Positions 16,528 to 54,444 of a DNA stretch of 64,000 nt are shown here, in pieces. The stretch lies in sequence record NC_071039.1, one strand, 5' to 3'. The notes under the pieces were generated by a model that did no database searches, was not told the DNA's origin, and worked only from the letters and a program-made list of their open reading frames with translations. Both the position numbers and the translations under genes were made by a program. How positions within the stretch are numbered: position 1 is the first letter of the stretch; the number at the start of each line of letters is the position of its first letter.

Positions 16528-16715
16528 ACTAGTTTTAACTACTTAAAGCGCTGTAGCATAGCTGTACATAAGCGCTAAATTAGCGCAAATTTGCGTGTTT
16601 TTATGCGTTACAATACATAGCTAATACTACGCATGCAAAACGCGCTATAGCGCAAATTTGCGTGTTTTAAGCACATCTACTATGCTTTTTATTTTGCATT
16701 GTATTTAATGCACAG
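16528..16715. repeat. GA/TC/GG/CC-free island A with internal repeats
   Basis: 149 nt with none of the four dinucleotides and one TC in 188 nt; TAGCGCAAATTTGCGTGTTTT occurs twice. Confidence 0.8.
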
Positions 16716-16762
16716 GGACAGTATTGTATGCTTGTTTGTGTCATATAAGACAATAAAATGTT

Positions 16763-17005
16763 ATGTTACATTATCTTCCAGTTATACTATTCGTTTATGT
16801 TATAGGAAACATATTATCATTGTTTTTATACAATGTAGTATCATACAGCACACTATTTCCATATAGTATGTTACACAAACAAAACCACAAGAAAACTCTG
16901 TTTCATAAATTTATAAAAATGTGGTGGTTTTCCTACTTAAACATTATTGTACTCAGTTGTGCTTGCATATATGTAATAGGCAAAAAATATATAAAGAGAA
17001 TTTGA
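16763..17005 (+). CDS. small membrane protein
   Basis: Two hydrophobic segments; converges on the terminator at 17061. Confidence 0.5.
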   Translation: MLHYLPVILFVYVIGNILSLFLYNVVSYSTLFPYSMLHKQNHKKTLFHKFIKMWWFSYLNIIVLSCACIYVIGKKYIKRI

Positions 17006-17060
17006 AATATTATAAAGATTTTATTAAGATTATGATAAATTTAATATAGAACTAATTTAC

Positions 17061-17091
17061 AAAATAAAAGGGCTTAACGCCCTTTTATTTT
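17061..17091. terminator. bidirectional terminator between convergent genes
   Basis: AAAATAAAAGGGC-TTAAC-GCCCTTTTATTTT. Confidence 0.8.
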
Positions 17092-17097
17092 AATCAA

Positions 17098-17418
17098 TTA
17101 TTCTATTTTTGCATGAATAGTACATAGCATATTGTGATATGCTTCCTGGTATTCAGATTCTAGTTTAATCATATCTAAGTAGATAAAAATAGCCTCTATT
17201 TTGCCTAACTTAGACAACCGTTCATCTTTTTTGCTCTTAATTAGATTTCCTATAAACTGTCTGTCAAATTTATTAACAGAACCGTTTTCACAAATAACTT
17301 CTACATAATCTACATAAGAAAGATGTAAATCGTCTAAGCTTATGCTAGGCAGAAATTCTTCTATATCAAACGAAATCCCCTCCTGTTCGGGGAGTTTTTT
17401 AAGATAGATTTTGGCCAT
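17098..17418 (-). CDS. hypothetical protein (late-promoter associated)
   Basis: GGAG SD; CTAAATA on the minus strand at 17447-17453. Confidence 0.6.
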   Translation of the reverse strand: MAKIYLKKLPEQEGISFDIEEFLPSISLDDLHLSYVDYVEVICENGSVNKFDRQFIGNLIKSKKDERLSKLGKIEAIFIYLDMIKLESEYQEAYHNMLCTIHAKIE

Positions 17419-17554
17419 ATATGCTACTCCGTTCTATGCATATAGATATTTAGCAATTATACAAAAATGCATAGTTTTAATAGCACACACAAACACGATG
17501 CAGCGTATTAGTTAGTTTTATTACCAAGCAAAATTGTGCATTTTTTGCCCAAAA

Positions 17555-17582
17555 AAAACAGCCCTAGCTAGGGCTGTTTTGT
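17555..17582 (-). terminator. intrinsic terminator
   Basis: AAAAACAGCCCTAG/CTAGGGCTGTTTTT inverted repeat. Confidence 0.7.
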
Positions 17583-17585
17583 TAG

Positions 17586-17825
17586 TTAAAGCTTTTCTAA
17601 AACAAGTGTTAGCGCATCTTCTCCTATATTAAAGTGTTGTGTCGCACTAACATGACAAAACTTGCCATATATATCTAATGCAGATATTACAACATCTTCA
17701 ATAACTTTTTCTATCATTTCACTAGTATCTTTACATCTACATTTTAGTGTAATGTTATCCATAGTTTCTTCAATGGATATAATATTAATGCCCTTTACTT
17801 CTAAAGCTTCTTTTATTTCTTGCAT
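17586..17825 (-). CDS. hypothetical protein
   Basis: Start MQEIKE with GGAG SD just after the upstream stop. Confidence 0.55.
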   Translation of the reverse strand: MQEIKEALEVKGINIISIEETMDNITLKCRCKDTSEMIEKVIEDVVISALDIYGKFCHVSATQHFNIGEDALTLVLEKL

Positions 17826-17826
17826 T

Positions 17827-18567
17827 TTACTCCGCGCGAGTGGAATCGCGCTCAAGTTTTTGAGAAACCTTAAGTTCTAATTCCTCAACGGCCTTAGCTT
17901 TGCTTTCTTCTAGTAAAGCTCTAGCCTTTTCTTCTTCTCGTTTCTGCCTAGCTTCCCTGCGCTTTTCCTTACGTTTTTCTAGGCGCTCTTTGTAACGTTC
18001 TTCTAGTTCTTCTTCTGTAAGTTCACGCTGACGACCCGGAGCTGGTTTTAGTTCAGGACATAAAGAATATGCAAGCTCTAACTTTGCATCAGCCTCTTCT
18101 TTAAGTAACCGTGCTTGAACTATAAGACCTTCTGCTCGTTGTTTATCAGTAATAGATTCTTCAACTACAGGTACTGATGCGGTTTCTGTATGTACAGGGT
18201 CGGCACCTGCTAATGCAGCTTCACGTATCTGAGAATTAATAAGTTCTAAAGCAACATTAGTACCTGGGTACGGTTGCATAAAAACCTGTCTAACTTCCAC
18301 TTTGCGTAAAAAAGACCGATCGTGCATTGTACGAAGTGCAGGCAATCCGTCACCTAAAAGTTTATTATTTAGGACAGTATACAAATCGACAGAATTTTGT
18401 CCTTCTCTACTTTCAACTATAGTTTTTAGGTTATCTTGGTACATGTCTGGTAGTCTATCTATTTCAACTACTAAACAATGAGTAGGATCATCGGGTAATT
18501 CCCGGAACACGACATACACACGTGTTCCGGTATTAGCGATTTTCCCTATGTGGCGCTTAAGACTCAT
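17827..18567 (-). CDS. conserved hypothetical jumbo-phage protein with C-terminal coiled coil
   Basis: KRHIG...RVYVVFRELP...CLVV N-terminus; E/K/R-rich tail. Confidence 0.7.
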   Translation of the reverse strand: MSLKRHIGKIANTGTRVYVVFRELPDDPTHCLVVEIDRLPDMYQDNLKTIVESREGQNSVDLYTVLNNKLLGDGLPALRTMHDRSFLRKVEVRQVFMQPYPGTNVALELINSQIREAALAGADPVHTETASVPVVEESITDKQRAEGLIVQARLLKEEADAKLELAYSLCPELKPAPGRQRELTEEELEERYKERLEKRKEKRREARQKREEEKARALLEESKAKAVEELELKVSQKLERDSTRAE

Positions 18568-18584
18568 TAGGAAATCTCCGTGTA

Positions 18585-18887
18585 TTATTTGGCTTCAGTT
18601 TCAGCTTCTTGCTCTTCTTGTTTAGGTTCAATTGCTGATACAAAAGATTTAACTTTACTAAACACTCCACCGACGCTAGCCATTTCTTCTGCGCGGAATG
18701 CTCCGCGTTGGCATGCAACATCAACTATGGTTAGTAAATCTTTAATGTCTTGTACACCTAGACGAGGTTCTTCGCTTGCTTGTTCAGTCATATTCTCTTG
18801 ATCTACAACTTCTTTTTCTACAACTTCTTTTTCTACAACTTCTTTTTCTACAACTTCTTTTTCTACAGCTTTAGCTTTCTTAGCCAT
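18585..18887 (-). CDS. conserved small acidic phage protein
   Basis: DIKDLLTIVDVACQRGAFRAEEMASVG motif; N-terminal (VEKEV)n repeat. Confidence 0.7.
   Translation of the reverse strand: MAKKAKAVEKEVVEKEVVEKEVVEKEVVDQENMTEQASEEPRLGVQDIKDLLTIVDVACQRGAFRAEEMASVGGVFSKVKSFVSAIEPKQEEQEAETEAK
18803..18862. repeat. 15 nt tandem repeat x4 (coding VEKEV)
   Basis: CTACAACTTCTTTTT four times, exact. Confidence 0.9.
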
Positions 18888-19482
18888 TTAACATTTCTCC
18901 GTAATTGTGTGTCGGGCTCGATTCAATTTCTGATATACATTTTTTATCAGTAATAATTATTAAGTTTGAATCCCACGGCAAATAAAATTTCCAATCACTA
19001 TCTCTTATTAAAATAGGTAATTGTTGCCTACGAGAAACAAGTTCATAATAAGTAGGTCTATGTGGCATTTTAATGGGAATAATATTCTTGTTATCGCCTT
19101 TTTTGTTATTACAAACTTTACATGCAGTGCATATATTAGTCCAATTTGTCTTACCACCGTATCTCTTAGGTAAAACATGATCAAGTGTTAGTTGTTTAAC
19201 AGGAAACGTTCTAAAACAAAACTGACACTGATAGTTATCCCTTAAATATACGTTGTTTCTGGAAAACTTTGTTTTATGATTCCATTTAATGTATTCAGTT
19301 GACATTACAATAGACGGAACCTTCATAGTAATACTGGGAGAATTAACTTCCCAATTGTCGTAATTTTTTAAAATTTCGACCTTGCCAAGCGATACTAATT
19401 TAATACTAGTTTGCCAGTCTACAACAGATAATGGTAACATGCATAACGGATTACCGTCTTTGTCAAGTATCAAAGTATCCAT
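18880..19482 (-). CDS. HNH endonuclease (HNH_5/McrA-like)
   Basis: RDNYQCQFC, LTLDHVLP, WTNICTACKVCNNKKG. Confidence 0.88.
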   Translation of the reverse strand: MDTLILDKDGNPLCMLPLSVVDWQTSIKLVSLGKVEILKNYDNWEVNSPSITMKVPSIVMSTEYIKWNHKTKFSRNNVYLRDNYQCQFCFRTFPVKQLTLDHVLPKRYGGKTNWTNICTACKVCNNKKGDNKNIIPIKMPHRPTYYELVSRRQQLPILIRDSDWKFYLPWDSNLIIITDKKCISEIESSPTHNYGEMLNG

Positions 19483-19509
19483 TTATAAACTACACAGTTA
19501 TTTATCTTT

Positions 19510-19987
19510 TTATTTCATGTATTTCTTTAATTCTTCCGGAAAACCTTTTAATGTTACAAACACTTGATCTTCCTGTTTTTCGAAATCAATGTTATAAAAA
19601 ATTTCATTTTTTGCAGGTTGTATTTCTTCTAAAATAGTATACTTTCCATCACAATTAGAGTCTAGCCATACACCTAAGTAAAGCTTAAATACCTCTCCTA
19701 ACCCGTTAGCAGATCGTTGTACACTAAACCTAGTCATATTAACAAAATCCACTTAATATTCCTGGGTCTACATATTGTGAAAAGTATACAGTAGATCTAC
19801 CATCTTGTATTTTTATATACCAAGGATATTTTATATTGGTACTAATAACTGCAATGAGTTTTTCTACTTCATCCTTAGAAATATGAACTACATATTTGTT
19901 ATAAAGTAAATTAGAATATAGAGTAGTGCCTTTTAATGAATAAAATTCGTCTTCTGTTAATCTATATTCCCGTGTGACAGAAATCAT
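19510..19987 (-). CDS. two small hypothetical proteins (19510-19752, 19739-19987)
   Basis: Tandem ORFs, AAGGAG SD before 19987. Confidence 0.55.
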
Positions 19988-20071
19988 ATACGTTTCTCCT
20001 TTTATTAAAGTATTTATCTACGTATATATTTCCTAAGAAGGGAAACAACGCCTTCCCTAGCTAGTGTGCAT

Positions 20072-20100
20072 ATTATATAACAGCATATTACCGTTGTCAA
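20072..20100 (-). promoter_or_regulatory. consensus sigma70 promoter
   Basis: TTGACA-17 nt-TATAAT exact on the minus strand. Confidence 0.85.
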
Positions 20101-20107
20101 TATATTT

Positions 20108-20533: not shown

Positions 20534-20575
20534 AAAAAATAGTCCTTAATATGGATATTTATCTTATATATAAAT

Positions 20576-20602: not shown

Positions 20603-20604
20603 CA

Positions 20605-23196
20605 TTACTTACCTTTTCTTACCAAAATTGACATACAATGTGCTAATTCGTCATAGTAATTTGGAAATAATTGCTTTACTTTTTTATGAAAACTCATAGG
20701 CATTGTTTTATTTTTATCTGCTATATAGTAATATTCGGGATCAACTTTCATTAATCTAATAGCATCAGTGCCAGTTAATTGCATTTTATTTAATAATGTT
20801 TCAGTTTCCCTAGATTTAGGCAATTTATTATTACATATTTCAGATATTACAAGGCAAGGTTTAATGTTATCTATATTGTTATTTGCTACAAATTCGATAA
20901 ATTTTGTTCTAAACGAAATTTTAAATAATTGTTCAGGAATAGGTGTATTATATACTATTGAGTTTAAATCTAAATCTGTTAATATTTTTGCCATACGTTT
21001 TATACAGTCTTTAGAATTATAATAAATTACACGATAGTATGGAGTATTATGCCATACTTGTATATACTTCATTAACACTTTGGGGTGAATACTAACAATA
21101 GTTTTTAACCGCTCGGTTGGAATAACATCACCGAATGTGTGTATATGTCTAGCAACAAACTTGTCTGACATTTTAGAAACTAATCTAGTTTTTGCTGCTG
21201 TAGATGCATCTACAGCAGCATGATACAGTAGTTCGTCGTCATTAGAATAATTATTCTCTATTAGTTTTACGATGTTATGTTTTTTGCAATTATACGTATT
21301 TAATAAGATTTCTTTCAAATCTTCTTTTTCTATATAAATTTTGTTATTCATTTGTTTTTCTTTTTCCTTTGCCTGTAGATAAAATATACATAAAATATTC
21401 TTCGTTATTTTTTAATTCGGGATACATCTTAAACATTTCTGACCAACTAGTTTTTGTTAATTTTTCGAGATGCTTAGGTACTATAGGCTTAAAGGTTGTC
21501 GTATATTTCTTAGCAAATGCTACTAGGTTAGCACCTGTAAACGGAGTGCCGTGTACAAATTCTTTAGAAGAAAGTTCATCCGATATATCGTTTTCGTTAA
21601 TTTCAAAAAAGTTAACAACATTGTATACATCAGATTTAGAAATGTACCTATTTTTTATTATATCGTTTTTTATTGTATCTAAAGTAAATATTTGCTTAAG
21701 ATCGTTTACTGTATCTAAAGCATATTTAGGACACAATTTATTAGACTTATTAAAGTCAGATACTGTATGTTTAAATGCTGGCGGCAAGTGGTAATAATAC
21801 GAAAATGTATTATAAGTAAATACAAGATTTGCCATACTACACAGACGTTTAATATGTTTATCTATTACACTGGCATATAATTTATCATAATTTTTATATG
21901 TTTTTAAATTATGTAAATCAGACACATCTATTTTATTTAAACACAGCATCAATGGAATACAGTCACTGTACCTAGCTGCCACATTATTTACAATAGGTTT
22001 ACTGTTGAATTTAGATTTAAACTCATTAATTATTTTTTCATTAAACAAAATAGAAATGTCTTTTATAAGAAATTCATGCAATGCTCTGCATAACCCATCA
22101 AACTGTGTACTATTCTTAAATGCATAAAGACTAGTAGATAAACTATCATTGTTAAAAAACGATGATAATGCATGGTGTGCATCTGATGAATGCGCTAGCG
22201 GTATGTCATATCTAATAGAACTTTCTAATATATATTCTATATCGTTTCGTTCTACCGAATTCCAGTCAATTTGCGATAACATTTGTGATACTGATTTTTT
22301 CATTAGTTTCGGGGACCTTTAAGTTTTGCTAGTACATGTTGTTCTGACCCAGCCAAATGAGGGAAGATCTTTATAAGTTTGTTCCAGTACGAATACGGCA
22401 AAAAATCGAGATTTATATAATCTAAATATTTTATAGAATTACTATGCAACCTATTCCTCGAAAGTATAGTCAATATATGTCGTCCTGCTATATAAGACCA
22501 ATCTATATTTTTAAGAAATGTAATACAACTGTCAGTAGACATTGTCTGACCATTTGCTTTATGCATATAGAATAGCGAAGACATCCTTTCAAAAAGAAAC
22601 CAGTGATATTGTTTATTTTTAGAAATAGTATCAAACCCTACAAATTTTACATATTCTTCAAAAACAGAATATCTTTTACTACAAAAAAAATTAAATACTG
22701 TTTTATCCAACAAAACGTTATGTCGTTTTAATTCTTTTAAAATAAGTCTTACTATGTTTAAATCAGGTAAAGATTGTATGGTACACAATTGCGTTATTAT
22801 ATCTTTAGATAATGCTTTTCTCGGTTTTAAATTCTTTAAAACAACATAAAATAATTTATGACATGTTATAGGAACTTTCATAGGAAACATTGAATTTGAA
22901 AATTTTCCAATACATTGCCTGACAAGATATAAATCTTCTTTACTTATAGATCTGTTATATTCACTAATAGAAGATGAATAATTACTTGATATAAAGTTTA
23001 CTAATTTGGGACTTTTAATTTCCATAAGAACATTCAATACAGTAGCATTGAACGGTATATATTCAACATCAATAGAATTACAGACTGCAATTAGTGCATC
23101 TTTAGCTGAATTATTAGCAATTGTTATTTCTTTATTTTTTCTAAATTTAATGAAATATTCTAATTCACTTAAAGCTTTAATGTAACTAATATCCAT
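20605..23196 (-). CDS. three tandem helical proteins (20605-21351, 21344-22303, 22303-23196)
   Basis: Translationally coupled, 248-319 aa, with similar C-termini ([WF]x[KE]xxxx[FY]Px[LY]). Confidence 0.65.
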
Positions 23197-23222
23197 ACAT
23201 ATACCGTAAAAATTTTTACCAT

Positions 23223-27149: not shown

Positions 27150-28083
27150 ATGAATCATTGTGTTAGGTTTGCTTTTTTAGATAGAAATATAAAAAGTTCT
27201 ATAACAACGTTTATAGTTATACCTTTAATTCTTACTTCAGTAATATATTTCCTTTTTTCAGAACAAAATGTGTGGCCAGCGTGTTTTTATTTTGTCACTA
27301 TGCTTATAATTTTGTTTATTGCAGAACTAGCAGCGTGTTCATCTGGAAATTTTTTTAATTGTGCTTTAAGTATATTCTCTATTTTTAGAAATATTGGTCA
27401 CTTTGATACAACTTGGAAAATAACAAATGATGGTTTTATTTATTCTTTAAAAGATAACGAAACTATACACATCTTTGTAAATAAAAACGGTGTATATTTA
27501 CATAATAATGGAAAATTTATTTATGTAGATAATGTTAAAAATACTAAAATAGATTTATCTAAACTGTCTCACCCGGTATTTATATTAATAACATTTTACC
27601 TAAAACATAAACTCAAAGAAGATATGATACTGGCAGATTTATACGGATCAGTAAGTTCTAGTGTATTCATAAATGATGAAGATTTTCAAAAATTATACAG
27701 ACGCTAAAAAATATCTAAATACGTTTGTTTCTTGTAAACCAGAACAAACAGATATGCATAGTGTATTGAATGGATATCAAAATTATTGTATATTCTCGTG
27801 TTTAATAGATTCTGCACAAAATTTAATAACAACTAAATTTTCTGATACTAATACTAATTCATACGAATGGATTATTTCGTACAAAGAAAATAATAAAAAT
27901 ATAACATATTCTGTTGAAAACAAAACAGACATCCTAAAGAATAACGGGTTGTCTGTTGCCTTTATTGTATGTAGGGCAAAAATAGTGTATACTAATAAAT
28001 TAACAGAATTTGGTAAAACTAAATTAAAAGAAAAAAGAAATATTCTGTTAATAGACAGAGATAAAGAAAAACTAAAAATATAA
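27150..28083 (+). CDS. two hypothetical proteins (27150-27707 membrane protein; 27673-28083)
   Basis: Coupled ORFs. Confidence 0.55.
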
Positions 28084-30363: not shown

Positions 30364-30658
30364 AATTAATTATAGCAAAGTATATGAACCGAAAGGCGCA
30401 CTATATAGAATTCGTCGCATTTCTGACGGTGCATTTAGCACAGGGTCTTCCAGTCCGGTGTTTGTAACTTCTGGTCCAGGAAAAGTATTCAATACCTTAG
30501 GTAAACTTAGGTCTCATCTTACTACTATTCGTAATAACCCGGTTTTACAAGACATATACAACAAATGTGAAATTGTTCAGTATGTAGAAGCTGACCAGTC
30601 AACATACACTCTAGCTGAACACACAGAATTACTTATACTTAAAAAGTTAACACAATAA
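30353..30658 (+). CDS. conserved small phage protein
   Basis: YRIRR..DG.FSTG...P.F...GKV...LG.LRSHL motif. Confidence 0.65.
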   Translation: MTNKINYSKVYEPKGALYRIRRISDGAFSTGSSSPVFVTSGPGKVFNTLGKLRSHLTTIRNNPVLQDIYNKCEIVQYVEADQSTYTLAEHTELLILKKLTQ

Positions 30659-30762
30659 CGCGCTTTACTGCGCGTTAATTTGCGCGTATGCTGCAAAAAC
30701 ACGTAACACTAGAGCTTATATACGCTTATGCTTAAAAAGCTGTATAACGCAATTTATGCGTT
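30627..30762. repeat. GA/TC/GG/CC-free island B
   Basis: 136 nt with a single GA; AACGCGC/GCGCGTT inverted repeat. Confidence 0.7.
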
Positions 30763-42131: not shown

Positions 42132-42214
42132 TTTATTTAATACGATACTAGACTATATATGGTATTTTTTTGTATGATATACAATGACAGTTGGGAATTT
42201 AAATGCTTTTTACG

Positions 42215-42355
42215 GTTGCTGCAAAGCATGCAAAATAACGCATACGTAAACAGCACAAAACACGCGCATAATGCGTTGTTTGTGTGCTTTGTGTATACTG
42301 CACTACTATGCAAACTAGCATGCAAAATAACGCATTTTTGCAGCTATAACGCTAG
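42215..42355. repeat. GA/TC/GG/CC-free island C
   Basis: 141 nt with none of the four dinucleotides; AGCATGCAAAATAACGCAT occurs twice. Confidence 0.8.
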
Positions 42356-42562
42356 GGGTACATATTCTTAATTCACTAGAATGATGTATATTTTTAAATT
42401 CTAAATTTAACCTATCTTATAATATACATTACGGAAATGTTACAATTAAAAATTTATTATCTCAGACTTTATGCACATTCAATCTTATAATACTATATTA
42501 AATACAAGTAAAAATATATTTATTGATTTGCAAGTAACATTTAACAAACGGAGTATATTTTA

Positions 42563-43790
42563 ATGGTCTCTGTTAATATACCGTTAATTGTATCTAATAA
42601 AATATATAAAATGGAATTTGAATATGGCGGCAAGGATGATGTGTTATATTTGTGTATGTATAGTGACAAAAATACATATCTACATAATATAATAGTCAAC
42701 ACAGAATTCTCTATGCTTTTTGTTCAATGTATGGGTAAAACTATACCACTAGAATCGATATTATATATCCAGTCAAATATAAAAACAATAAGTGTGACTG
42801 ATGACTATGGCTGTATAACCCTACATAACGATACATTTTGTTTATGTACTGGATATTTTCAGGAAAAAGTTAAATTTTTTGCAGATTAAATATGAATGAA
42901 CAAATTATATTATGTTTCCAAGCATGCGTTAATAAATTTGCCTACTTAGGAAACCCAAAAATAAGATTATTTGGAATCGGTAAAAGTGTCAAGATATCTG
43001 CACGGAATTATAACAATATGGATATAGGTTCGTTTAACAGTAATATGAAATTTTTATTATATATCGATAGTATCCAAGATATTGGAATATATGATGAAAA
43101 TTTTATATTTTATATATCAATAAATTCAGACGAAATATCATTTTTGGGTTCTACAGGTACCGCACAAGTAGATACTGAACTCGGAATTACTATATTCTTT
43201 ACCCGCCCCAAAACATAATCTTAAATTATGATATTCATTGCACAGCGACTGTTACATAAAATAACATATAATAAAAATACAATACTGTTAGGTTGTTTTA
43301 ATAGTGGATATTTTTTAATTAATAGAAGAAGTGGTATTGGATTCTTATTTACAGATATATGTATGAAACGAATAAAATGCATTTATTTCATATTATATAT
43401 TTCGCGTAATACCAATACTATAGGCAAAGATGCAATCTATATTAAAGATTTAGAACTGTTAAGAGTAATGCACATACTTCGATGAATATAAATTTAATAC
43501 TGATACTTCAAAGATGTACGTCTGTAATAGGAGGATTCCAGCGCGGAGGCGCAACACTTATTCATATTTATAGTGATTTTAATTTATCTGCTATAATGAC
43601 GTTATACAAAAGAAGATGCAAATGCATTGTATTTACTGACATTTTGTTTAACAACATTAAAGCCGGTTCTATAGATATCATTATCTATATAAGTAAGAAT
43701 GCAAACCTAATACACTATAACTTTGCCTACATAGCTACATCTCGTACAGATGGAGTTTCTGTTCCTTTACACGATTTGACAGGAATATGA
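42563..43790 (+). CDS. four small ORFs of the diverged paralog family
   Basis: 42563-42889, 42892-43218, 43228-43485, 43482-43790; motifs ILYIQSNIKTI, FYISINSDEI, LYISRNTNTI, IYISKNANLI. Confidence 0.55.
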
Positions 43791-44272
43791 ATAATCCTAT
43801 ATATAATTTTATACTTGCAAGACGAATATGCAAACGGTATAGAATAAAATTTAATCCTTTTGTAAAATTAGATACAGGAAGTTTACAAATAGATAACGCA
43901 GATAAAATAACAGTTAGCGTAAATGTGTTTGATAGTAATTTTATACCTATATTTTGGCACGAAATAGGGCATTATATTCATCATATATTAGTTAATTATA
44001 AAATTTATTTCGATTACTATACTCCTATTTGTCCTACACACGGGTATCTTTTATATAATAAGACACAAGATTTTTATAAATGTCTTTATTCCGAAATGTT
44101 TGCTAGTAGATTTGCACTAAAGGTGTGCGGAGCAAAACATAAGAAATACCTCATAAAATGTTTTCACACATACACCTCTGCTGCATTCAAAACCAACATC
44201 GCCAGTCAATCTAAATTTACAAGATTTGTAGATTTTGTAGAAAAACTTTCTAGAAAATTAAATAGATATTAA
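43787..44272 (+). CDS. HEXXH zinc metallopeptidase-like protein (IrrE/ImmA-like)
   Basis: FWHEIGHYIHH and SEMFASRFA. Confidence 0.65.
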   Translation: MNNPIYNFILARRICKRYRIKFNPFVKLDTGSLQIDNADKITVSVNVFDSNFIPIFWHEIGHYIHHILVNYKIYFDYYTPICPTHGYLLYNKTQDFYKCLYSEMFASRFALKVCGAKHKKYLIKCFHTYTSAAFKTNIASQSKFTRFVDFVEKLSRKLNRY

Positions 44273-44557: not shown

Positions 44558-44774
44558 CATATAAAAGTATGCGTATAATTTGCACATATAACGCAATAAC
44601 GCAACAACAAACAAAACGTAATAAAAAATGTTGCAATAGCTTAAAAGTTTTAGTATAATAAGCACGTAACAACGCAATACAGTTTACAAACAAAACGTAA
44701 TAAAAAATGTTGCAATAGCTTAAAAGTTTTAGTATAATAAGCGTATAATGCAGCTTATATAACAAGTTAAAAAC
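44558..44774. repeat. GA/TC/GG/CC-free island D containing a 57 nt direct repeat
   Basis: 217 nt with none of the four dinucleotides; 44607-44663 is identical to 44686-44742. Confidence 0.85.
44631..44738 (+). promoter_or_regulatory. tandem duplicated sigma70 promoters for the tRNA cluster
   Basis: TTGCAA-17 nt-TATAAT at 44631-44659 and 44710-44738, each with an A-rich UP-like tract. Confidence 0.75.
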
Positions 44775-44851
44775 CCCTCGGTAGCTCAGTTGGTTAGAGC
44801 GCGCGACTCATAATCGCTAGGTCACTGGTTCGAATCCAGTTCGAGGGACCA
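44775..44851 (+). tRNA. tRNA-Ile2 (CAT anticodon, lysidine type)
   Basis: Cloverleaf with encoded CCA; anticodon arm GCGA-CTCATAA-TCGC as in bacterial tRNA-Ile2; A73. Confidence 0.85.
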
Positions 44852-44873
44852 ATTTTAAGATGTTGTGCTTTTA

Positions 44874-44958
44874 GCCCGAGTGGTGAAATTGGTAGACACA
44901 GGAGACTTAAAATCTCCCGCTTCGCAGCGTACCGGTTCGAGTCCGGTCTCGGGTACCA
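44874..44958 (+). tRNA. tRNA-Leu (TAA)
   Basis: GGAGA-CTTAAAA-TCTCC anticodon arm, long variable arm, CCA. Confidence 0.95.
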
Positions 44959-45008
44959 AACAAAAGATATAAATACTTAACAAGATAGGAAACTATTCTA
45001 AAATTAAA

Positions 45009-45084
45009 TGGCTAGTAGCTCAGTTGGTAGAGCAAATGACTGTTAATCATTAGGTCGTAGGTTCGAGTCCTACCTAGCCAGCCA
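45009..45084 (+). tRNA. tRNA-Asn (GTT)
   Basis: Cloverleaf, T1-A72, G73, CCA. Confidence 0.95.
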
Positions 45085-45110
45085 ATTACACTTTGTTGTA
45101 TATTCAATAT

Positions 45111-45186
<76 letters not shown>

Positions 45187-45255
45187 ATTTTAAATAACAG
45201 TTGTATCTAAAGAGATACAATAGTCTAAATAAAATATTCATATAATGTTTCAAAC

Positions 45256-45332
45256 GGGACTTTAGCTCAGTTGGTTAGAGCGCGCGACTCATAATCGCTA
45301 GGTCACTGGTTCGAATCCAGTAAGTCCCACCA
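45256..45332 (+). tRNA. tRNA-Ile2 (CAT), second copy
   Basis: Positions 8-65 identical to the first copy; acceptor stem GGGACTT/AAGTCCC; CCA. Confidence 0.85.
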
Positions 45333-45382
45333 ATTTTTATATACAAATCAAACTATACTTAAACTATATAATGAATGAATAT

Positions 45383-45467
45383 GCCCGGTTGGTGAAATCG
45401 GTAGACACAGGAGACTTAAAATCTCCCGACGAAAGTCGTGCCAGTTCGAGTCTGGCACCGGGCACCA
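45383..45467 (+). tRNA. tRNA-Leu (TAA), second copy
   Basis: Same anticodon arm as the first copy, different acceptor and variable arms; CCA. Confidence 0.95.
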
Positions 45468-45693
45468 AACTCCTACAAAAGGAACATATTATAGTATGTT
45501 CCTTTTTTATTATGATATTTTTATTATGAATGAAATAATGCATATATCTGCCAACACATACGTAATAGAATATCGCGTATTAAACAAGTTAGTAGTCACT
45601 ATAAAAAATAATAGATCTTTCACATTATGGATACATTTTGATATCGGTGCATTTTCTATAGCATGGAAATACAATGCAATATAGAATTAAAAA

Positions 45694-45855
45694 ATGAAAT
45701 ACATTATTAATTTACAATACTCAACAGAAGTAATATATATGCCTTGTTTTAACATATTATCGCTATGCGATAATAGATCTGTTACTATCCTTTCTATTAC
45801 TATGATATTTAAGATAAGATACTATTTACATCCGATGTACCGTTATATTCTATAA
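45694..45855 (+). CDS. half-length member of the small paralog family (not in ORF track)
   Basis: MKYIINLQYSTEVI..., 53 aa. Confidence 0.45.
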   Translation: MKYIINLQYSTEVIYMPCFNILSLCDNRSVTILSITMIFKIRYYLHPMYRYIL

Positions 45856-46331
45856 TACATAATATTTTTATTGTAACAAATACCAGAAGTGCTTAGATAA
45901 TATATAGCAATTCTGTTTATTATCGAGATTGCGGTATACTTAGTATTTCTTATTAACCGTATTACATAGAATAAAGAATGGAAAAAATTTTAACTATTTC
46001 ACATAAAACATTAATATGTGAACTGTCGTTATTAAACTGGTCGAAATCCATAGTTTGTGCATATTCTGGCGAAATAATATGGTATGTTCGGTTGCATAAG
46101 AAATGTTATGTAGTACAGCTAAGATGATAATGAACTGTATTTTTTCCTATTCGTACTATTTAGAACGCATCGTATGTCATGCAAAAATCTACAAAAGGTT
46201 TGTAGTCAGTAAAAATACTTTTTGTGAGAAATCCGTAATAGCTTTATACTTAATAAATAGTGGTAGTTATTTTCATAAATGTTACGTCGATCATTACTTA
46301 ATTGTATAGATATATATTTTAATAAAAATAG

Positions 46332-46360
46332 TTGACCAAACGCACAAAACAGTATATAAT
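46332..46360 (+). promoter_or_regulatory. sigma70-type promoter for tRNA-Arg
   Basis: TTGACC-17 nt-TATAAT. Confidence 0.7.
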
Positions 46361-46411
46361 GTTACGCATACAAAGCATTATTACAAAGCTATCATTAGTT
46401 GCACAAGATAT

Positions 46412-46488
46412 GCGCTCGTAGCTCAGCTGGATAGAGCATCCGCCTTCTAAGCGGATGGTCGGGGGTTCGAATCCCTCCGGGCGCGCCA
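46412..46488 (+). tRNA. tRNA-Arg (TCT)
   Basis: Cloverleaf, TCCGC-CTTCTAA-GCGGA, CCA. Confidence 0.95.
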
Positions 46489-47027
46489 ATTTTTAAAGAG
46501 TGTTGTGTTATGCAAACAATAAGATTTGACATAAGACTTCTTCGTTATAGTATGAAACAAGGTTTCTGCTGTATAGGTAAAGATATATTCGAAGTGTGCA
46601 GAAAAACTCGGATCAGTCCAGGTCAGCTAAACTTACGAAAAATTATATAGGACGAGTATTAATCGGAATTGATTCAAACTACAATCTGCACAATACCTGT
46701 TTAGTAGGATGGACTCACTATAAAAATATTATAGTATAAAAATTTATATTAATAATATGAATAGATGCAAAGAACATCTACAATACAGAACAATCAAAAA
46801 GCATACATTAACTTGTAGGAAATGCAAAGAGTTATCGTTACAAATAAAATTATTTTGGCTTCAACAACAAGCATTCAGTATTAGAACTGATACTAGCGGA
46901 ATATACATATTCGATAATAAATATAATTCTATTTACGTATACTCTGTGGCCTGGTATAATACAGAATTATACGGTAAAGGGACAATAATTTTAGAATAAA
47001 CATGTATATATAAGAGTACCTCAATTA

Positions 47028-47360
47028 ATGAATAATTATTCTAATGATACAGATATTCTAAAATGGATAAAGCGTAACAATAGAAAAAATGCACGTCTAA
47101 TTTCATATATAGACGGAATATATAATATTGTTTATTTCGATGGCGGAAAAGCAAGAGTTGGCATAGTAAAAGACAATATGCACTGCAGATACGGAATACA
47201 TAGTCGTGGATCTATGTATTCGAAAGATATAATGAGCCTGTGGCAATCTAGTACAGGTTCGTGTTCGCCTGATGATGTAAAGATTATGCAAGATTATCTA
47301 GACGATAAATGTATGCTTCCGGAATTTGATTTTTCTCAGATTAAAAATTTAAAATGGTAA
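47028..47360 (+). CDS. conserved hypothetical phage protein
   Basis: YGIHSRGSMY...LWQS.TG...MQDYLD...LP.FDF motif. Confidence 0.65.
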   Translation: MNNYSNDTDILKWIKRNNRKNARLISYIDGIYNIVYFDGGKARVGIVKDNMHCRYGIHSRGSMYSKDIMSLWQSSTGSCSPDDVKIMQDYLDDKCMLPEFDFSQIKNLKW

Positions 47361-47383
47361 ATAATATAACAATATAGTTTTAT

Positions 47384-47460
47384 CGCAGGGTATGCAAGAG
47401 GTCTAAGCAGAAAGGCTCATAACCTTTTTATCGTGGGTTCGAATCCCACCCCTGCAACCA
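47384..47460 (+). tRNA. tRNA-Met (CAT), initiator-like
   Basis: C1:A72 mismatch, AAAGG-CTCATAA-CCTTT, CCA. Confidence 0.8.
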
Positions 47461-47469
47461 GTTTTATAT

Positions 47470-47546
47470 CTAGGCATAGCTCAAGTAGGTAGAGCACTTG
47501 CTTTGGGAGCAAGAGGTTGGGGATTCGAGGTCTCCTGCCTAGACCA
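47470..47546 (+). tRNA. tRNA-Pro (TGG)
   Basis: Cloverleaf, C1-G72, A73, CCA. Confidence 0.92.
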
Positions 47547-47555
47547 ATTTACTAT

Positions 47556-47628
47556 GCAGTCCTAGCTCAATTGGTAGAGCACTGTCCTTCCAAGTCAGAT
47601 GTTACGGGTTCGAGTCCCGTGGGCTGCT
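47556..47628 (+). tRNA. tRNA-Gly (TCC)
   Basis: Cloverleaf, T73; no encoded CCA (followed by CAA); T30:T40 mismatch. Confidence 0.82.
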
Positions 47629-48443
47629 CAATATTCTGATATAATTGATTAGTATATCTAATCGATGGTTAGTGTAGTGGATGCATATGGAAATATAGAA
47701 GTATTAGTTATGCCATCTAACATAACGGTACTAGAATTACAGGCATATACAACAGAGCTATTGTATGTAAGAAAATCTCATTGTTTATGTTTATACCTTC
47801 CTAATATAGGAAATTATGCTTTATGGTTTTTAGACAGATAGGATAAAAATATAAATTGATATTATTCTGTTTAAGGAACTAGCATTAAATGGCAGGTTGC
47901 TTATTTAGACTAGATTTGTCTATTTTTCGTGAAAATGTATATAGTATTTCTAGTTTGTCTTATACAAAATCTATATGTGTTTCAATAAAAACTATGCCGA
48001 CAAGCAATAGAAAACAATTAGAAATATATATTGTAGATAAAACAACTGATTTTTTAGTTGCATGCAAGTATTTTTAGCTTATCTATTTTGACTTGCCTTT
48101 AAAATAAATAACCATTATATATTTGATATAACAACTATTCTAAATAGAAATAAAACCATAAATACACATAATAACGGTGTGGATTTATGGAAAACATATT
48201 TAGGATATCTATTAATGCTAACGAAGGTATTATACGAATATCCCCTACTTACTTTTTTAATGGTGTTTTTTATTCAAAGCATTTGAATATTTTTATAATA
48301 GATCCCGACGGATATTTAATAAGAAAAATATATACTTGTAGTACATTCTTATGATGATTTCTTTTAAATATACAAAATAACATTTGACAAAAGTATAATT
48401 ATTTCGTATAATAAGTGTATAAAATAACAAAAGAGAATTTTAA

Positions 48444-48803
48444 ATGATTTCCAAAATTCAAATTGTATACGGAATATATCTTCCTACTGCCGATGCAAAA
48501 ATTATATACGAAGACTCAGAATACGAATCTAATAAAATAAATAAAAATATTAGATTATTTGCAAATGATGATTATTTAGAAGATAAGATTTTAGAAAATA
48601 AGGAATTCGAAGATAATCCCTATGTTCCGCACTTTTATGGTATCTTTTGTAAAGAATTCGATAATGACCAAAGTGCATACTTATATAATGTTCCTAAATC
48701 TTTTATAGATGAATATAATAATGTAGCTCCAGCTATTTTAGCTAGACTCGGTTATTTATATAGAGTTGCAGGAAAACAACCTTGTAGAATAATTTACGAA
48801 TAG
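48444..48803 (+). CDS. hypothetical protein
   Basis: 119 aa with AGAG SD and an upstream TTGACA promoter-like element. Confidence 0.6.
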   Translation: MISKIQIVYGIYLPTADAKIIYEDSEYESNKINKNIRLFANDDYLEDKILENKEFEDNPYVPHFYGIFCKEFDNDQSAYLYNVPKSFIDEYNNVAPAILARLGYLYRVAGKQPCRIIYE

Positions 48804-48817
48804 AATTAACTAGTTTT

Positions 48818-48907
48818 GGAGAGGTGATAGAGTCTGGTTTATTATACTAGTCTTGAAAACTAGCGGATCGAAAGGTCCCGTGGGTTCGAATCCCACCCTC
48901 TCCGCCA
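48818..48907 (+). tRNA. tRNA-Ser (TGA)
   Basis: CTAGT-CTTGAAA-ACTAG, long variable arm, G73, CCA. Confidence 0.95.
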
Positions 48908-48912
48908 AATAT

Positions 48913-49002
48913 AGATACTTGACCGAGTGGCTTAAGGTGCTTCCCTGCTAAGGAAGTGAGTTTGAAAAAGCTCCGTAGGTTCGAATCCTACAGTATCTGC
49001 CA
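48913..49002 (+). tRNA. tRNA-Ser (GCT)
   Basis: CTTCC-CTGCTAA-GGAAG, long variable arm, G73, CCA. Confidence 0.95.
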
Positions 49003-50752: not shown

Positions 50753-50963
50753 TAGATTACATCTTTAAATTAAGTTCCTATTGTTTAATTTTTATAGATT
50801 CATCACGCCATTATGGTGTACACTACGATCTGGCAGAATATTTTTCAGACGGTTCTATATGGTATAAATGGTCTTATGAGACCACTTCGCACAACGATAC
50901 TCAGTATAATAAAGGAAAATACACAAAAAGTTTTATATACTTAATGGAAGGAAAATATTCAGC

Positions 50964-51482
50964 ATGAAAGGGTATGATTTAATTAAAGAATATTATGGTA
51001 CCCGGGTTGCTAAACGTTCCGGGATTCCGTTAATGAACCATATAGATGAAGGTCTAAAAATTTTAGATACAATAAATTCTTCATACGAAGTAAAAGAAGC
51101 ATTTTGTTTACATCCTTTGCTCCAAAATAACGAAGAATTTGAAAATAACTATGATTTAGTAGTAAGCACAGGCGGCCTGGTAACAAAAAGTATTCTTCTT
51201 GCAATGGAATATAGACACAAAGCAAATACATATTTGTGTAAAAAAGAAACAGATCATTGGACAGTCGAATATGCATCTAAAAAAATAGGTCATGTTATTC
51301 ATCCTGTAAAAGAAATGCTAATAGCAGATAAGGTTCAAAATTTCAAAGATTTTAAAATATATCATAAAGACACCCACAAAAGATCTCATCAATTATCTAA
51401 ATATTTTAAAAATTGGTTAACAATCTTAGAAATATCCGACGCTGACGCCAAAGATTTAGAACAAGTGTGTTATAAAGATTAA
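50964..51482 (+). CDS. divergent HD-domain-like protein
   Basis: KRSGIPLMNHIDEG, FCLHP and LIADKVQN resemble the HD-hydrolase layout, with HP in place of HD. Confidence 0.45.
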   Translation: MKGYDLIKEYYGTRVAKRSGIPLMNHIDEGLKILDTINSSYEVKEAFCLHPLLQNNEEFENNYDLVVSTGGLVTKSILLAMEYRHKANTYLCKKETDHWTVEYASKKIGHVIHPVKEMLIADKVQNFKDFKIYHKDTHKRSHQLSKYFKNWLTILEISDADAKDLEQVCYKD

Positions 51483-51543
51483 CACACATTAGATTTATAA
51501 ATGCAATGCCACTAAATATCTTTAATTATGTAGGAGATATATT

Positions 51544-52182
51544 ATGTGGCAACAGCGTTGGGCATTAGTTGGAGACTCTATCCAGGCATGGGTATTAGAA
51601 AATAGTAATAGTGGTATTATTCCGAGGGCAGATAAACTCACTGCATCTATGATACCGTTTAAAGTAAACGCATCTATACAGAACGTGTCTGTCCCGGGTA
51701 TGCGTTTAGCAAAAGGAACTGATCCTAGTGATCCGTTTGATATTTCTTCATTAAGCAAATTACATGGATTTTTCGGGTTAAACGGAGTTGTGTGTACATT
51801 AGGTACAAACGACTACGGAAGTCCATACGTAACTACAGTCGATTATTTTTATGCTTTAACTGATTTTTTGAATGCAGCAATATCGTTAACCATACCTGTT
51901 GTAATTGTTTCGCCTATATGGCGACAAGATAAGGATACATCTGTATTAAAATACGACGGAACGACTAATGTACTTGCAGATTTTCAAAATACAGCACAAT
52001 GGGTTACTTCACTTGTTTCTGCTAATAATAGTAATGTCTATTTTATAGATGGGAAACAAGCACCTGTCCAAAATGCAACATATTTTGGCGATGGATTGCA
52101 TTTAAATGCTGCCGGGCATGCTAAATTTTGCACATGGTTAGTAAATGAAATGAAATCCAAAAATCTTTGGCAACAATATTAA
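51544..52182 (+). CDS. SGNH/GDSL hydrolase (late-promoter associated)
   Basis: LVGDSI, LGTNDY, DGLHLNAAGH; CTAAATA at 51512-51518. Confidence 0.88.
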   Translation: MWQQRWALVGDSIQAWVLENSNSGIIPRADKLTASMIPFKVNASIQNVSVPGMRLAKGTDPSDPFDISSLSKLHGFFGLNGVVCTLGTNDYGSPYVTTVDYFYALTDFLNAAISLTIPVVIVSPIWRQDKDTSVLKYDGTTNVLADFQNTAQWVTSLVSANNSNVYFIDGKQAPVQNATYFGDGLHLNAAGHAKFCTWLVNEMKSKNLWQQY

Positions 52183-52184
52183 TA

Positions 52185-52214
52185 AAACATTGCCCGCTAA
52201 TGCGGGCAATGTTT
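52185..52214. terminator. intrinsic terminator
   Basis: AAACATTGCCCGC-TAAT-GCGGGCAATGTTT. Confidence 0.75.
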
Positions 52215-52288
52215 TATTGTATTTTTATTTTTCTTATGCTATTATACAAATAATAAATAATGGACGTTTAATAACAAGGAAATGTTTT

Positions 52289-52519
52289 ATGAGTTCAGAA
52301 TTTGATATAGATGACAGCGGACTTGCTGAAACCCACGAACAAATTGTAGAAAAAGCTGTAAGTAAAATACGAAAAGAAATGGCAAGAAATTCTGGCTATA
52401 CCGAATGTATAGATTGCGGAGAAGAAATAGGAGAAGAAAGAAAACGTATACTACCAAGTGCAACAAAATGTGTGGAATGCCAGTCGTTGTTTGATCTGAG
52501 AAATAAGTTATACAAATGA
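52289..52519 (+). CDS. traR: TraR/DksA C4-type zinc finger protein
   Basis: CIDCGEEIGEERKRILPSATKCVECQ; acidic N-terminus (DIDD); AAGGA SD. Confidence 0.8.
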   Translation: MSSEFDIDDSGLAETHEQIVEKAVSKIRKEMARNSGYTECIDCGEEIGEERKRILPSATKCVECQSLFDLRNKLYK

Positions 52520-53342
52520 ATCTATCATTATTATGTAAATTATCTAGAGTAGTTAGAAATAGTACAATCGTTGTTTCTATTGAATATTCTAATTTTTTTA
52601 TTTCCATTTTTAATAAAATATATAGTTTAATAAGAATTGACATTGTTTCTAATTTAGCTACATGTTGCTTACTACCAACTGTTATAAACCTATTATCGTT
52701 TTGTATAGAAGAAAGAAATGAAAATAAATCTAAAAAAGATAATAACACTAAACAAACTTAGTGAGATTATATTTAGAAAACAAATATAACCCGAATGTCT
52801 CTGAATTGCATTATAACGTATTAATAGATATAATATATTAAGAATCTAAGCAATAAATATTTGCATATAAGAAGGATTCTAATATGTCATATAATCCAAA
52901 TTTCAATACCTCTATTATAGGATTATCGTATAATTCTATAAAATTACATATAGTAGAACATGTACAAAAAGACATAAAAGGTAATACAGTTTACATTATA
53001 TCATTTGTAAATGATTTTGGATTTATTTTTGCTAAGGTAAAAACTAAATATGATCCTAAAACTGTCTTATAATGCACGCCAAATATGCATAGAACCAAGT
53101 ACCATATATACAACCATATATACATGTATATGGGTCCGGGGAGAAAAAGGGATAGTTTTGTATAGACGTATGATTTATGATACAAGATCGATGAGTATAG
53201 GTAATTATGATTATACAACTTATATTTCGCATGAAATAGGAGGCTTAGGCTGGACCAGTTATAAGAATTTAAAAAAATGCTAGATTTCGTTGTTATAAAA
53301 CAGTATACTAAACACTCGACACATTAACTAGCAGAGGTAAAC

Positions 53343-53492
53343 GTGGATAATATCAAATCGTGCAAATGCGCACATGATTTCCAGGACAGTGTGTACGGCA
53401 AAGGTAATCGTGTGCATAACGTGTTTACTAAGGGCTATCGTTGCACTGTTTGCGGTAAAGAAATTATTACTTCTTCCACTGGCAAGAAGTAA
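53343..53492 (+). CDS. tiny Zn-ribbon protein (GTG start, not in ORF track)
   Basis: MDNIKSCKCAHDFQDSVYGKGNRVHN...YRCTVCGK, 49 aa; GAGGT SD; own terminator at 53500-53525. Confidence 0.75.
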   Translation: MDNIKSCKCAHDFQDSVYGKGNRVHNVFTKGYRCTVCGKEIITSSTGKK

Positions 53493-53615
53493 AATATAAA
53501 AAAAGGGCACAATGTGCCCTTTTTTAATAGTAAGAAACAAAGTAAGTCATGCATTCAACTATCTATAATATACACTGTGCATTCTAATACACAGTGTATT
53601 GTTGCGAGTAATTAA

Positions 53616-53837
53616 ATGTCAACAACGCCTAGGGGAAAGAAAACTAAAATAACATGCAATAATATAGAATGTAATAATGTATTCGAAGTAAGAATTGCCG
53701 ATGTTAAAAGAGGTTGGGGACTATATTGTTCTAAGTCTTGTAAACAAACTGCACAAGAGCAACAGCGGCAAATGATAAAAAAATTATCCGGAGAACATTT
53801 GTTACCGAAGAATAAACGAAGAAAAAAGTATTGGTAA
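53616..53837 (+). CDS. small Zn-binding protein
   Basis: CNNIEC...KRGWGLYCSKSCK. Confidence 0.7.
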   Translation: MSTTPRGKKTKITCNNIECNNVFEVRIADVKRGWGLYCSKSCKQTAQEQQRQMIKKLSGEHLLPKNKRRKKYW

Positions 53838-54301
53838 GAGGTATAGTATGAGTTTAATACTAAACTATTCAATTTGTGCAAATACTACAACCATAACTTT
53901 TTATATTTTCGGATTAAACATTAAAAAGGCATGGGTATACGTTACAAAGTCAGATAAGTATGGTAGGTATTTGTACGTATCTCAAGACGGATGTATGGGT
54001 GTCTTTCCTGAATGGCAAATATAATTAAAATGAAACCGGTATTGTACTATGTAGGTGATAATCCCAAAGGGGCATTTTTGTGCGAAATTTATGGCAAGGA
54101 ATACCCATTTATTAATAATGAAACTAGATTTATTAAAGTTAATTCTATTTTTTATATATCTTTTATATCTGCTAAGTATACATATATAAAATTTCTAGTT
54201 AGATATAGATTTGTTACATGGAGGTTATACGACACTGATATTTATATTTCCTTTAGTAGAGCTATGACATCCGTTGAGCGGGAAATTAATAAAATAAGAG
54301 G

Positions 54302-54444
54302 AGTTTAAAAAATGCGTTATTTTGCACGTTTGCATTATGCTATACGCAAGTTTGCAATAACGTGCAAACGCATGTATAACGCTAATACAGCTAGCAATAC
54401 AGTGCATAAAAACATGTACAGCATACTAGCGTTACAACGCATAT
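54302..54444. repeat. GA/TC/GG/CC-free island E
   Basis: 143 nt with none of the four dinucleotides; shares TGCAAAATAACGCAT (reverse strand) with island C. Confidence 0.8.

Follow-up and report, generated by a model that had tools for sequence, protein, structure and literature searches.

Why would a phage exclude a short dinucleotide step from a handful of small stretches of its DNA? The 3'-terminal 64 kb of the genome of Pseudomonas phage vB_PaeM_PA5oct (bases 222784 to 286783 of MK797984.1, 286,783 bp), hereafter called the window, contains five islands, A to E, in which G is almost never followed by a purine on either strand. We define a G-purine step as GA or GG on either strand, which amounts to GA, TC, GG, or CC when one strand is read. 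PA5oct is a jumbo myovirus with a terminal repeat of 39 kb, and it depends on host RNA polymerase, as rifampicin abolishes the production of progeny. The composition of the islands raises the potential that they are regulatory modules from which the phage's own DNA modification motif is excluded, such that their guanines stay readable, an explanation to which we give roughly an even chance of being correct. Alternatively, it is also possible that the islands reflect the motifs of bound proteins, the avoidance of enzyme traffic, or a mutational footprint. To distinguish among these explanations, we examined the pattern itself, the modification to which it may respond, and the anatomy and conservation of the islands.

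Seven discrete islands are depleted of G-purine steps

We used the whole 287-kb genome of PA5oct (genus Wroclawvirus) as the yardstick for statistics on the window. GA, TC, GG, and CC together account for 14.5% of positions in the window and 15.8% in the genome, in line with a preliminary description of the window that had expected roughly 15%, and the counts which that description gave within the islands were exact: one TC in A, one GA in B, and none in C, D, or E. The longest runs without any of the four in the window measure 217, 149, 143, and 141 nucleotides (nt), while first-order Markov simulations of the window produced maximal runs of only 50 to 80 nt. When only G/C positions were counted, against a genome rate of G followed by a purine of 47.5% on both strands, the five islands together had 2 of 279 positions in a G-purine step (binomial P = 3e-74 at a rate of 0.475), and the individual values for A, B, C, D, and E were 1e-17, 3e-12, 1e-16, 1e-16, and 6e-15. 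The earlier claim that runs of 140 to 215 nt are not due to chance is thus borne out.

A genome-wide sliding scan, in which the binomial test was confined to G/C positions and the cutoff was -log10 P >= 6, returned exactly seven regions (P from 1e-8 to 1e-17 each). These comprised the five window islands and two more, at record positions 21063-21199 and 27563-27753, both within the terminal repeat; the listing that the preliminary description had proposed therefore extends its five islands by two. We also scanned the whole genome for mirror rules (G preceded by a purine, G followed or preceded by a pyrimidine, and the amino/keto partitions), and each rule yielded between zero and two regions, none of them within the islands. 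Partitions of A/T versus G/C gave many regions, a trivial result, as these follow local G+C content. The same scan found no island in a control set of 80 other-phage IMG/VR loci (L014 to L093; 1.38 Mb, 35 to 41% G+C), which surround homologues of a tRNA-guanine transglycosylase (TGT)-like protein described below. The genome additionally contains coding stretches (record positions 240613-240813, 241576-241686, and others) in which A followed by a pyrimidine, counted on both strands, is strongly underrepresented; they are unrelated to the islands, and we assume that they arise from a purine-rich coding strand.

Given the Markov simulations, the genome scan, the mirror rules, and the test restricted to G/C positions, chance and base composition are ruled out as the cause. 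Repeats are likewise ruled out as the sole cause of the avoidance and cannot account for it, because island positions outside any repeated 8-mer are equally clean (1 of 55 G/C positions in a G-purine step, P = 2e-14). A general decay of intergenic DNA is ruled out as well, since ordinary intergenic DNA is not depleted (G-purine at 0.43 versus 0.48 in coding DNA). Throughout the genome, G-purine-free runs of at least 50 nt make up 0.93% of the sequence and are mostly noncoding, and runs of at least 60 nt are in excess (18 observed versus approximately 8 in block-wise simulations). We conclude that the island pattern is real, G-purine specific, strand symmetric, and discrete.

The avoided steps correspond to those implicated in DNA modification

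PA5oct virion DNA was digested with ten restriction enzymes in a 2025 preprint (PMC12191111). EcoRI, XbaI, BmrI, BsaI, and ApaLI did not cut it, and BsgI, FspI, HindIII, NdeI, and an enzyme listed with the site CACNNN/GTG did (PMC12191111). That site belongs to DraIII, although the table in the preprint says "DraI." The preprint's authors took these digests to indicate that G is modified in GA, GG, or both (PMC12191111). The two steps are separately supported, because the EcoRI and XbaI sites contain GA without GG and the BmrI site contains GG without GA, and in the sites of all five cutting enzymes G occurs only in GC or GT steps. Resistance to ApaLI (GTGCAC) is uninformative on modification, since the genome has only 2 such sites in 287 kb, compared to 22 to 139 for each of the other nine enzymes. 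The preliminary description had named G-purine as the modified motif, and the digests fit this for both GA and GG, with the two-site ApaLI set aside and at the level of inference that digests allow.

The vocabulary of the islands mirrors this result. Island G is almost always found in GC (61%) or GT (38%); GpC is enriched 3.5-fold and CpG 1.8-fold over expectation, and TT and CT are still abundant. Four of the five window islands have a G+C content of 35 to 40%, and a terminal-repeat island reaches 48%, versus 33% for the genome; island D is A rich. With GpC at 3.5 times its expectation in islands that are rich in G and C, G has been kept, but only in steps that would be unmodifiable. Therefore, the steps that the islands avoid are exactly those that the digests imply to be modified, and the steps that they keep are those shown to be cuttable.

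A candidate enzyme for the modification

Site-specific 7-deazaguanine modification by DpdA enzymes has been described in coliphage CAjan, where the motif (GA and GGC) is established, and at GA in the Pseudomonas phage iggy. The preliminary description had credited PA5oct with a deazaguanine DNA transglycosylase, and searches by homology gave no such enzyme. No TGT or DpdA match was found among approximately 30 proteins scanned with Pfam, PHROGs, PADLOC, and NCBIfam, and neither tblastn and phmmer searches with CAjan DpdA nor a profile of 20 CAjan DpdA homologues, which likewise lack Pfam hits, produced a match in PA5oct. Identification of a DpdA by homology was thus negative on family-model, CAjan-query, and profile searches alike.

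After these searches had failed, a motif search located DSGGFQ in EST35_0316, which itself has no match in Pfam, NCBIfam, PHROGs, or PADLOC. Two motifs, GDSGGFQ (positions 96 to 102) and SFDAASP (291 to 298), are invariant in 30 homologues, and by analogy with TGT we take their aspartates to be the catalytic residues. The AlphaFold model of the protein has a predicted local distance difference test (pLDDT) score of 87.9, and its six best fold matches in the PDB are all tRNA-guanine transglycosylases (E = 1e-4 to 5e-3; target template modeling score, 0.47 to 0.54). Based on this predicted fold and motif, EST35_0316 is likely to be the writer of the modification; the claim of a phage-encoded DNA transglycosylase is therefore upheld by structure and motif and finds no counterpart among family models. 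The protein is 100% identical in 10 of 11 Wroclawvirus records and 99.8% identical in the remaining one, PAC2. Its family includes more than 1,600 metagenomic homologues at approximately 50% identity, which are unannotated and none of which has a precomputed Pfam domain; in IMG/VR it accounts for 549 confirmed stretches, many of them on contigs of 200 to 390 kb.

EST35_0316 opens a run of plus-strand genes (202-6562) that includes a QueE-like radical S-adenosylmethionine enzyme, and FolE and QueD are encoded elsewhere in the PA5oct genome, as judged from annotation and tblastn with the CAjan proteins. QueC, which is needed for preQ0, had no convincing tblastn match in the genome with CAjan QueC as the query (best E = 0.03). 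It is possible that a host enzyme fills this step or that the base is derived from 7-carboxy-7-deazaguanine (CDG). Three further genes of this run have weak matches to base- or sugar-related enzyme families (Table 1), and instead of preQ0 PA5oct may carry a deazaguanine that is further decorated or derived from CDG.

The islands are sharply bounded and built from repeated boxes

The islands are located upstream of plus-strand genes, and their boundaries, at terminators and gene starts, are sharp (Table 1). Every island has boxes that recur 67 to 93 nt apart, among them GCGCAAATTTGCG and TGCAAAATAACGCAT; one 12-bp palindrome occurs twice and one 15-mer three times. A bidirectional terminator and a TTGACT hexamer immediately precede island A, whose 21-nt box, TAGCGCAAATTTGCGTGTTTT, recurs unchanged at 16648-16668 and as a variant in island B (30672-30685). 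Island B has boxes of 13 to 15 nt that recur 89 to 93 nt apart, with TGTATAACGC close to its 3' end. The 19-mer AGCATGCAAAATAACGCAT is present twice in island C (42225-42243 and 42317-42335), which ends in CTATAACGC, and the 15-nt core of this 19-mer appears once more in island E, on the opposite strand. Island D carries a 57-nt repeat twice (44607-44663 and 44686-44742), and island E holds a third copy of TGCAAAATAACGCAT (54312-54326, minus strand) together with TTGCAA-N17-TGTATAAC. Some rare words are common to several islands, such as AAAGCGCTGTA in A and a terminal-repeat island and ACATAGCTAATAC in A and F. The sharing of k-mers between islands exceeds that of a Markov model trained on the islands, and the restricted alphabet reproduces much of it.

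The preliminary description had placed the islands ahead of gene blocks. This holds for the tRNA cluster downstream of island D, in a genome whose tRNA annotation was validated by RNA-Seq (Lood et al.), and for the tilS-like gene downstream of island E. The "paralog arrays" of that description are not supported for the block after island C (42563-44272), since BLASTP showed only a weak match between 0389 and 0390 there.

Table 1. Positions of the features discussed (window coordinates unless marked as record positions)
Feature	Position	Strand	Remarks
Island A	16528..16715		188 nt; one TC; 36% G+C; upstream of small gene 0341
Terminator of gene 0340	16493..16526	+	intrinsic and strong; stem of 15 bp; bounds island A on its 5' side
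21-nt box TAGCGCAAATTTGCGTGTTTT	16581..16601	+	island A; contains 12-bp palindrome CGCAAATTTGCG
Island B	30627..30762		136 nt; one GA; fills gap between genes 0365 and 0366
Island C	42215..42355		141 nt; no G-purine step; 40% G+C; downstream of gene 0385, within doubtful coding sequence 0386
Island D	44558..44774		217 nt; no G-purine step; ends exactly at first base of tRNA-Met; G-purine-free run of the tRNA cluster, -35 box TTGCAA
Promoter P1 (predicted)	44631..44659	+	TTGCAA, 17-nt spacer, TATAAT; A-tract upstream; within repeat 44607-44663
Promoter P2 (predicted)	44710..44738	+	identical to P1, 79 nt downstream; within repeat 44686-44742
tRNA cluster	44775..49002	+	12 genes; starts with tRNA-Met, directly after island D
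Island E	54302..54444		143 nt; no G-purine step; 163 nt upstream of tilS-like gene
tilS-like gene	54607..55218	+	downstream of island E
Run upstream of gp450	60382..60434		53 nt; TTGCTA-N17-AATAAT; repeated CAATGTGCA; -35 box TTGCTA
ncRNA001 run	record 8186-8271 (outside window)		86-nt G-purine-free run; -35 box TTTACA
ncRNA002 run	record 21901-21967 (outside window)		67-nt G-purine-free run; -35 box TTTACA
Doubtful coding sequence EST35_0386	42159-42371		70 amino acids; over island C; three of five relatives annotate no coding sequence there
Doubtful coding sequence EST35_0432	54312-54593		first 44 codons overlap island E
EST35_0316, candidate DNA guanine transglycosylase	202..1824	+	540 amino acids; TGT superfamily by motif and predicted fold
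Weak glycosyltransferase-like match	1824-2885	+	
Weak epimerase-like match	3623-4141	+	
Weak phosphoribosyltransferase-like match	4153-4587	+	
QueE-like 7-carboxy-7-deazaguanine synthase	4658..5530	+	radical S-adenosylmethionine enzyme; annotation and tblastn with CAjan proteins

Two annotated coding sequences, EST35_0386 and EST35_0432, overlap islands C and E. Their peptides are rich in Cys, Tyr, His, and Phe and, where they overlap the islands, contain no Asp, Glu, Gly, or Pro, and we regard such sequences as implausible proteins, which argues against a coding constraint. Reading frames in the islands stay open because G-purine-free DNA cannot hold TGA on either strand. The two are probably not genes, and, given the implausible peptides, the patchy annotation, and the impossibility of TGA, we treat all seven islands as noncoding.

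Several other identities were considered and rejected. Structured RNA is not indicated, as within the window only the 12 tRNAs reach the Rfam threshold. An iteron-type replication origin does not fit boxes that are present only two or three times and lie 67 to 93 nt apart; cumulative skew has no turning point at any island and appears to follow gene orientation. Finally, an assembly artifact is rejected because the islands are shared by five independently sequenced relatives from, among others, four named countries.

Promoters inside and outside the islands

Island D contains two identical predicted sigma-70 promoters, each with a 17-nt spacer and with 10 of 12 hexamer positions matching the consensus. 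As the preliminary description had observed, their -35 box is TTGCAA, which avoids the GA of TTGACA. The arrangement resembles the tandem sigma-70 promoters of rRNA and tRNA genes in having two promoters 79 nt apart, a 17-nt spacer, a consensus -10 box, A-rich upstream DNA, and stable-RNA genes downstream; it differs from them in that TTGCAA takes the place of TTGACA or TTGTCA as the -35 box and in that the whole 217 nt obeys the G-purine exclusion. The islands that lack a standard promoter have weaker candidates with TATAAC as the -10 box. On the plus strand, TATAACGC occurs near the 3' end of B and C, in the middle of E, and near the 5' end of D, and in B and E it is preceded by TG, as in an extended -10 element.

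Similar features are found at other strongly used promoters of the phage. Lood et al. reported that ncRNA001 and ncRNA002 are highly transcribed throughout infection and that gp450 is highly transcribed early. The promoters of these three lie in shorter G-purine-free runs, and the -35 boxes of the tRNA cluster, ncRNA001, ncRNA002, and gp450 promoters all avoid GA (Table 1). The first transcribed bases of ncRNA001 and ncRNA002 carry island words (ATAACGCAT and GCAATACAG).

Several of the -10-like boxes in the islands are followed by GC-rich discriminators (TATAACGCA and TATAATGCAGC), and discriminators of this kind make promoters sensitive to DksA and ppGpp. A DksA/TraR-type zinc-finger gene is located at 52289-52519, 1.8 kb upstream of island E.

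Conservation among relatives

Five relatives that are approximately 98% identical to PA5oct (from Thailand, Switzerland, Japan, Spain, and one unstated source) keep all five window islands. PAC2, one of these relatives, lacks one 79-nt promoter unit of island D; members of the genus therefore differ in how many tandem tRNA promoters they carry. We compared how often variable alignment columns create a G-purine step and found that 1 of 18 do so within the islands, the exception being in the last 17 nt of D, versus 310 of 988 comparable columns in the rest of the 40-kb alignment (binomial P = 0.01; Fisher P = 0.018). By enumeration, 34% of the transitions and 55% of the transversions possible in the islands would create such a step. 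This substitution pattern is consistent with purifying selection.

The arrangement of a terminator and TTGACT ahead of island A recurs in two more-distant relatives (L095 and L096). Contigs with homologues of 0316 and 0340 stop short of, or end at, the island A position. None of the 80 IMG/VR loci that surround TGT-like homologues is syntenic with the island sites, and scans of IMG/VR and JGI with protein 0385 gave no match.

Weighing the explanations

The explanation that we favor would run as follows. PA5oct would replace the G of GA and GG steps with a 7-deazaguanine-type base, written by the candidate TGT-fold enzyme and supplied by FolE, QueD, and QueE. In 7-deazaguanine chemistry, the substituent would sit at position 7, in the major groove. 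The islands would be noncoding regulatory modules, made of tandem promoters and repeated or palindromic boxes ahead of plus-strand genes, from both strands of which G-purine steps have been purged. Since G would occur only in GC and GT steps, an island would be fully canonical whatever the state of the remaining genome. The likely benefit is that proteins which read guanines in the major groove could bind injected, modified DNA and newly replicated DNA equally well. Sigma-70 could be such a reader at the TTGCAA boxes ahead of the tRNA cluster, and putative factors, one or more in number and probably dimeric, could read the repeated boxes. Both the unmodified state of the islands and protein binding as its cause are inferred here, and the islands are probably the only G-containing DNA that PA5oct keeps in this state.

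Several points weigh against this explanation. The GA/GG motif of PA5oct rests on gel digests in a preprint (PMC12191111). A standard sigma-70 scan found no promoter in islands A, B, C, or E, and G-purine-free runs of promoter size (45 to 60 nt) are no more frequent than in block-wise simulations. The genome has at least 12 perfect TTGACA-N16-18-TATAAT sites, including two in the early terminal repeat, and, because GA-containing promoters are so common, polymerase binding alone cannot require G-purine-free DNA. The evolutionary test is weak because the relatives are approximately 98% identical. Among more-distant contigs, L095, whose 0340 homologue is 63% identical, ends 53 nt past this gene, at the terminator and TTGACT (L095 positions 11200-11253), which may be an assembly break at repeated DNA; another, with a neighboring protein of 56% identity, has only a simple 39-nt promoter at the island A site, itself free of G-purine steps from TTGACT to the ribosome-binding site. 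Finally, in the 50 kb of CAjan that we examined, there was no GA-free or G-purine-free run beyond those of control dinucleotides.

These points limit what can be said of the earlier proposals. That the islands form a sequence-encoded set of unmodified windows agrees with the match between avoided steps and digests and with islands that are discrete, noncoding, and conserved, and it sits poorly with the lack of such islands in the 50 kb of CAjan examined. Host RNA polymerase binding as their purpose fits island D, where alone sigma-70 promoters are clear, and is countered by the TTGACA promoters found elsewhere.

It is also conceivable, although we think it improbable, that the vocabulary is a by-product of the motifs of bound proteins (AACGCA, TGCA, GCGC, and GCTGTA) and that its match to the modification is a coincidence. 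The islands do have many rare words in common and share k-mers above Markov expectation, and 8-mers found more than once in the island set cover 85% of its positions. However, the positions outside such repeats are just as clean, a restricted-alphabet Markov model reproduces most of the k-mer sharing, and a chance match to both GA and GG, which are independently supported, is improbable.

A second possibility, to which we attach a similarly small likelihood, is that the islands avoid enzyme traffic, from the transglycosylase or from a phage or host nuclease directed at G-purine steps, rather than protecting binding. Intermediates of base exchange, such as abasic sites and nicks, could harm DNA that is heavily transcribed or unwound, and a G-purine-directed nuclease could act on DNA in one modification state. 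This possibility draws on the same sequence evidence as the binding model, from which nothing in the sequence separates it; the islands include the most heavily used promoters, and PA5oct is a target of modification-sensing END nucleases. Yet the transcribed bodies of the tRNAs and ncRNAs themselves contain G-purine steps, and END nucleases would still meet modified flanks.

An extension of the favored explanation is that PA5oct has two promoter classes that read the chemistry of its own DNA, with the modification serving as an epigenetic timer of the infection program. G-purine-free promoters (those of the tRNA cluster, ncRNA001, ncRNA002, gp450, and the islands) would function whatever the state of the template, whereas TTGACA promoters, with a modifiable G at -33, could differ in strength between injected, modified DNA and newly replicated, unmodified DNA. 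We consider this extension unlikely.

Least probable is a mutational footprint of modified G, or of cytosines in TC and CC exposed to ultraviolet photoproducts or deaminases, left by decay under weak selection: strand symmetry is expected of such a DNA-level process and island D is A rich, but intergenic DNA keeps its G-purine steps, the G+C content of four of the five window islands exceeds that of the genome, the islands show an excess of GpC and CpG with TT and CT still abundant, and the island edges are sharp, so the photoproduct and deamination alternative raised in the preliminary description is unlikely.

Relation to known systems and implications

The nearest known concepts to the islands are vertebrate CpG islands and the avoidance of restriction sites. 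Like CpG islands, the PA5oct islands would be promoter windows of a few hundred bases that are free of a genome-wide base modification. However, the target dinucleotide is abundant in CpG islands, which are shielded by bound factors, while the PA5oct islands do without the target step, and the modification is methylation in the one case and 7-deazaguanine exchange, in a phage genome, in the other. With the avoidance of restriction sites or methylation motifs in phages, the islands share selection against a short enzyme-recognized sequence, seen as a statistical deficit. Known cases of such avoidance are genome-wide and directed against host enzymes, whereas PA5oct avoids its own modification motif, in only seven regulatory islands, and otherwise has it at normal frequency (47% of G).

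The modification systems of CAjan and iggy resemble that of PA5oct in their G-then-purine target, in phage-encoded FolE, QueD, and QueE, and in blocking restriction enzymes. CAjan differs in its DpdA, to which the 540-amino-acid TGT-fold enzyme of PA5oct has no detectable sequence similarity, as well as in the matter of QueC, which was not found in PA5oct, and in having no motif-free islands in the 50 kb examined. We found no mention of motif-free islands in the CAjan and iggy papers or in the wider literature that we searched.

Hypermodified phage DNA has mostly been studied as armor against restriction and CRISPR, and its effect on DNA-reading proteins is largely unexplored. The islands suggest a solution written into the sequence, wherein regulatory guanines are placed in steps that the modifying enzyme cannot touch. 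If this is true, such islands would offer a sequence-only clue to the modification motifs of uncultured phages, an explanation for unusual -35 boxes, and a possible link between modification state and the timing of transcription; should the view of two promoter classes also be true, motif-free islands would reveal a phage's modification motif from its sequence alone. In addition, the unannotated TGT-like family, with its many members on jumbo-phage-sized contigs, would become a set of candidate DNA transglycosylases.

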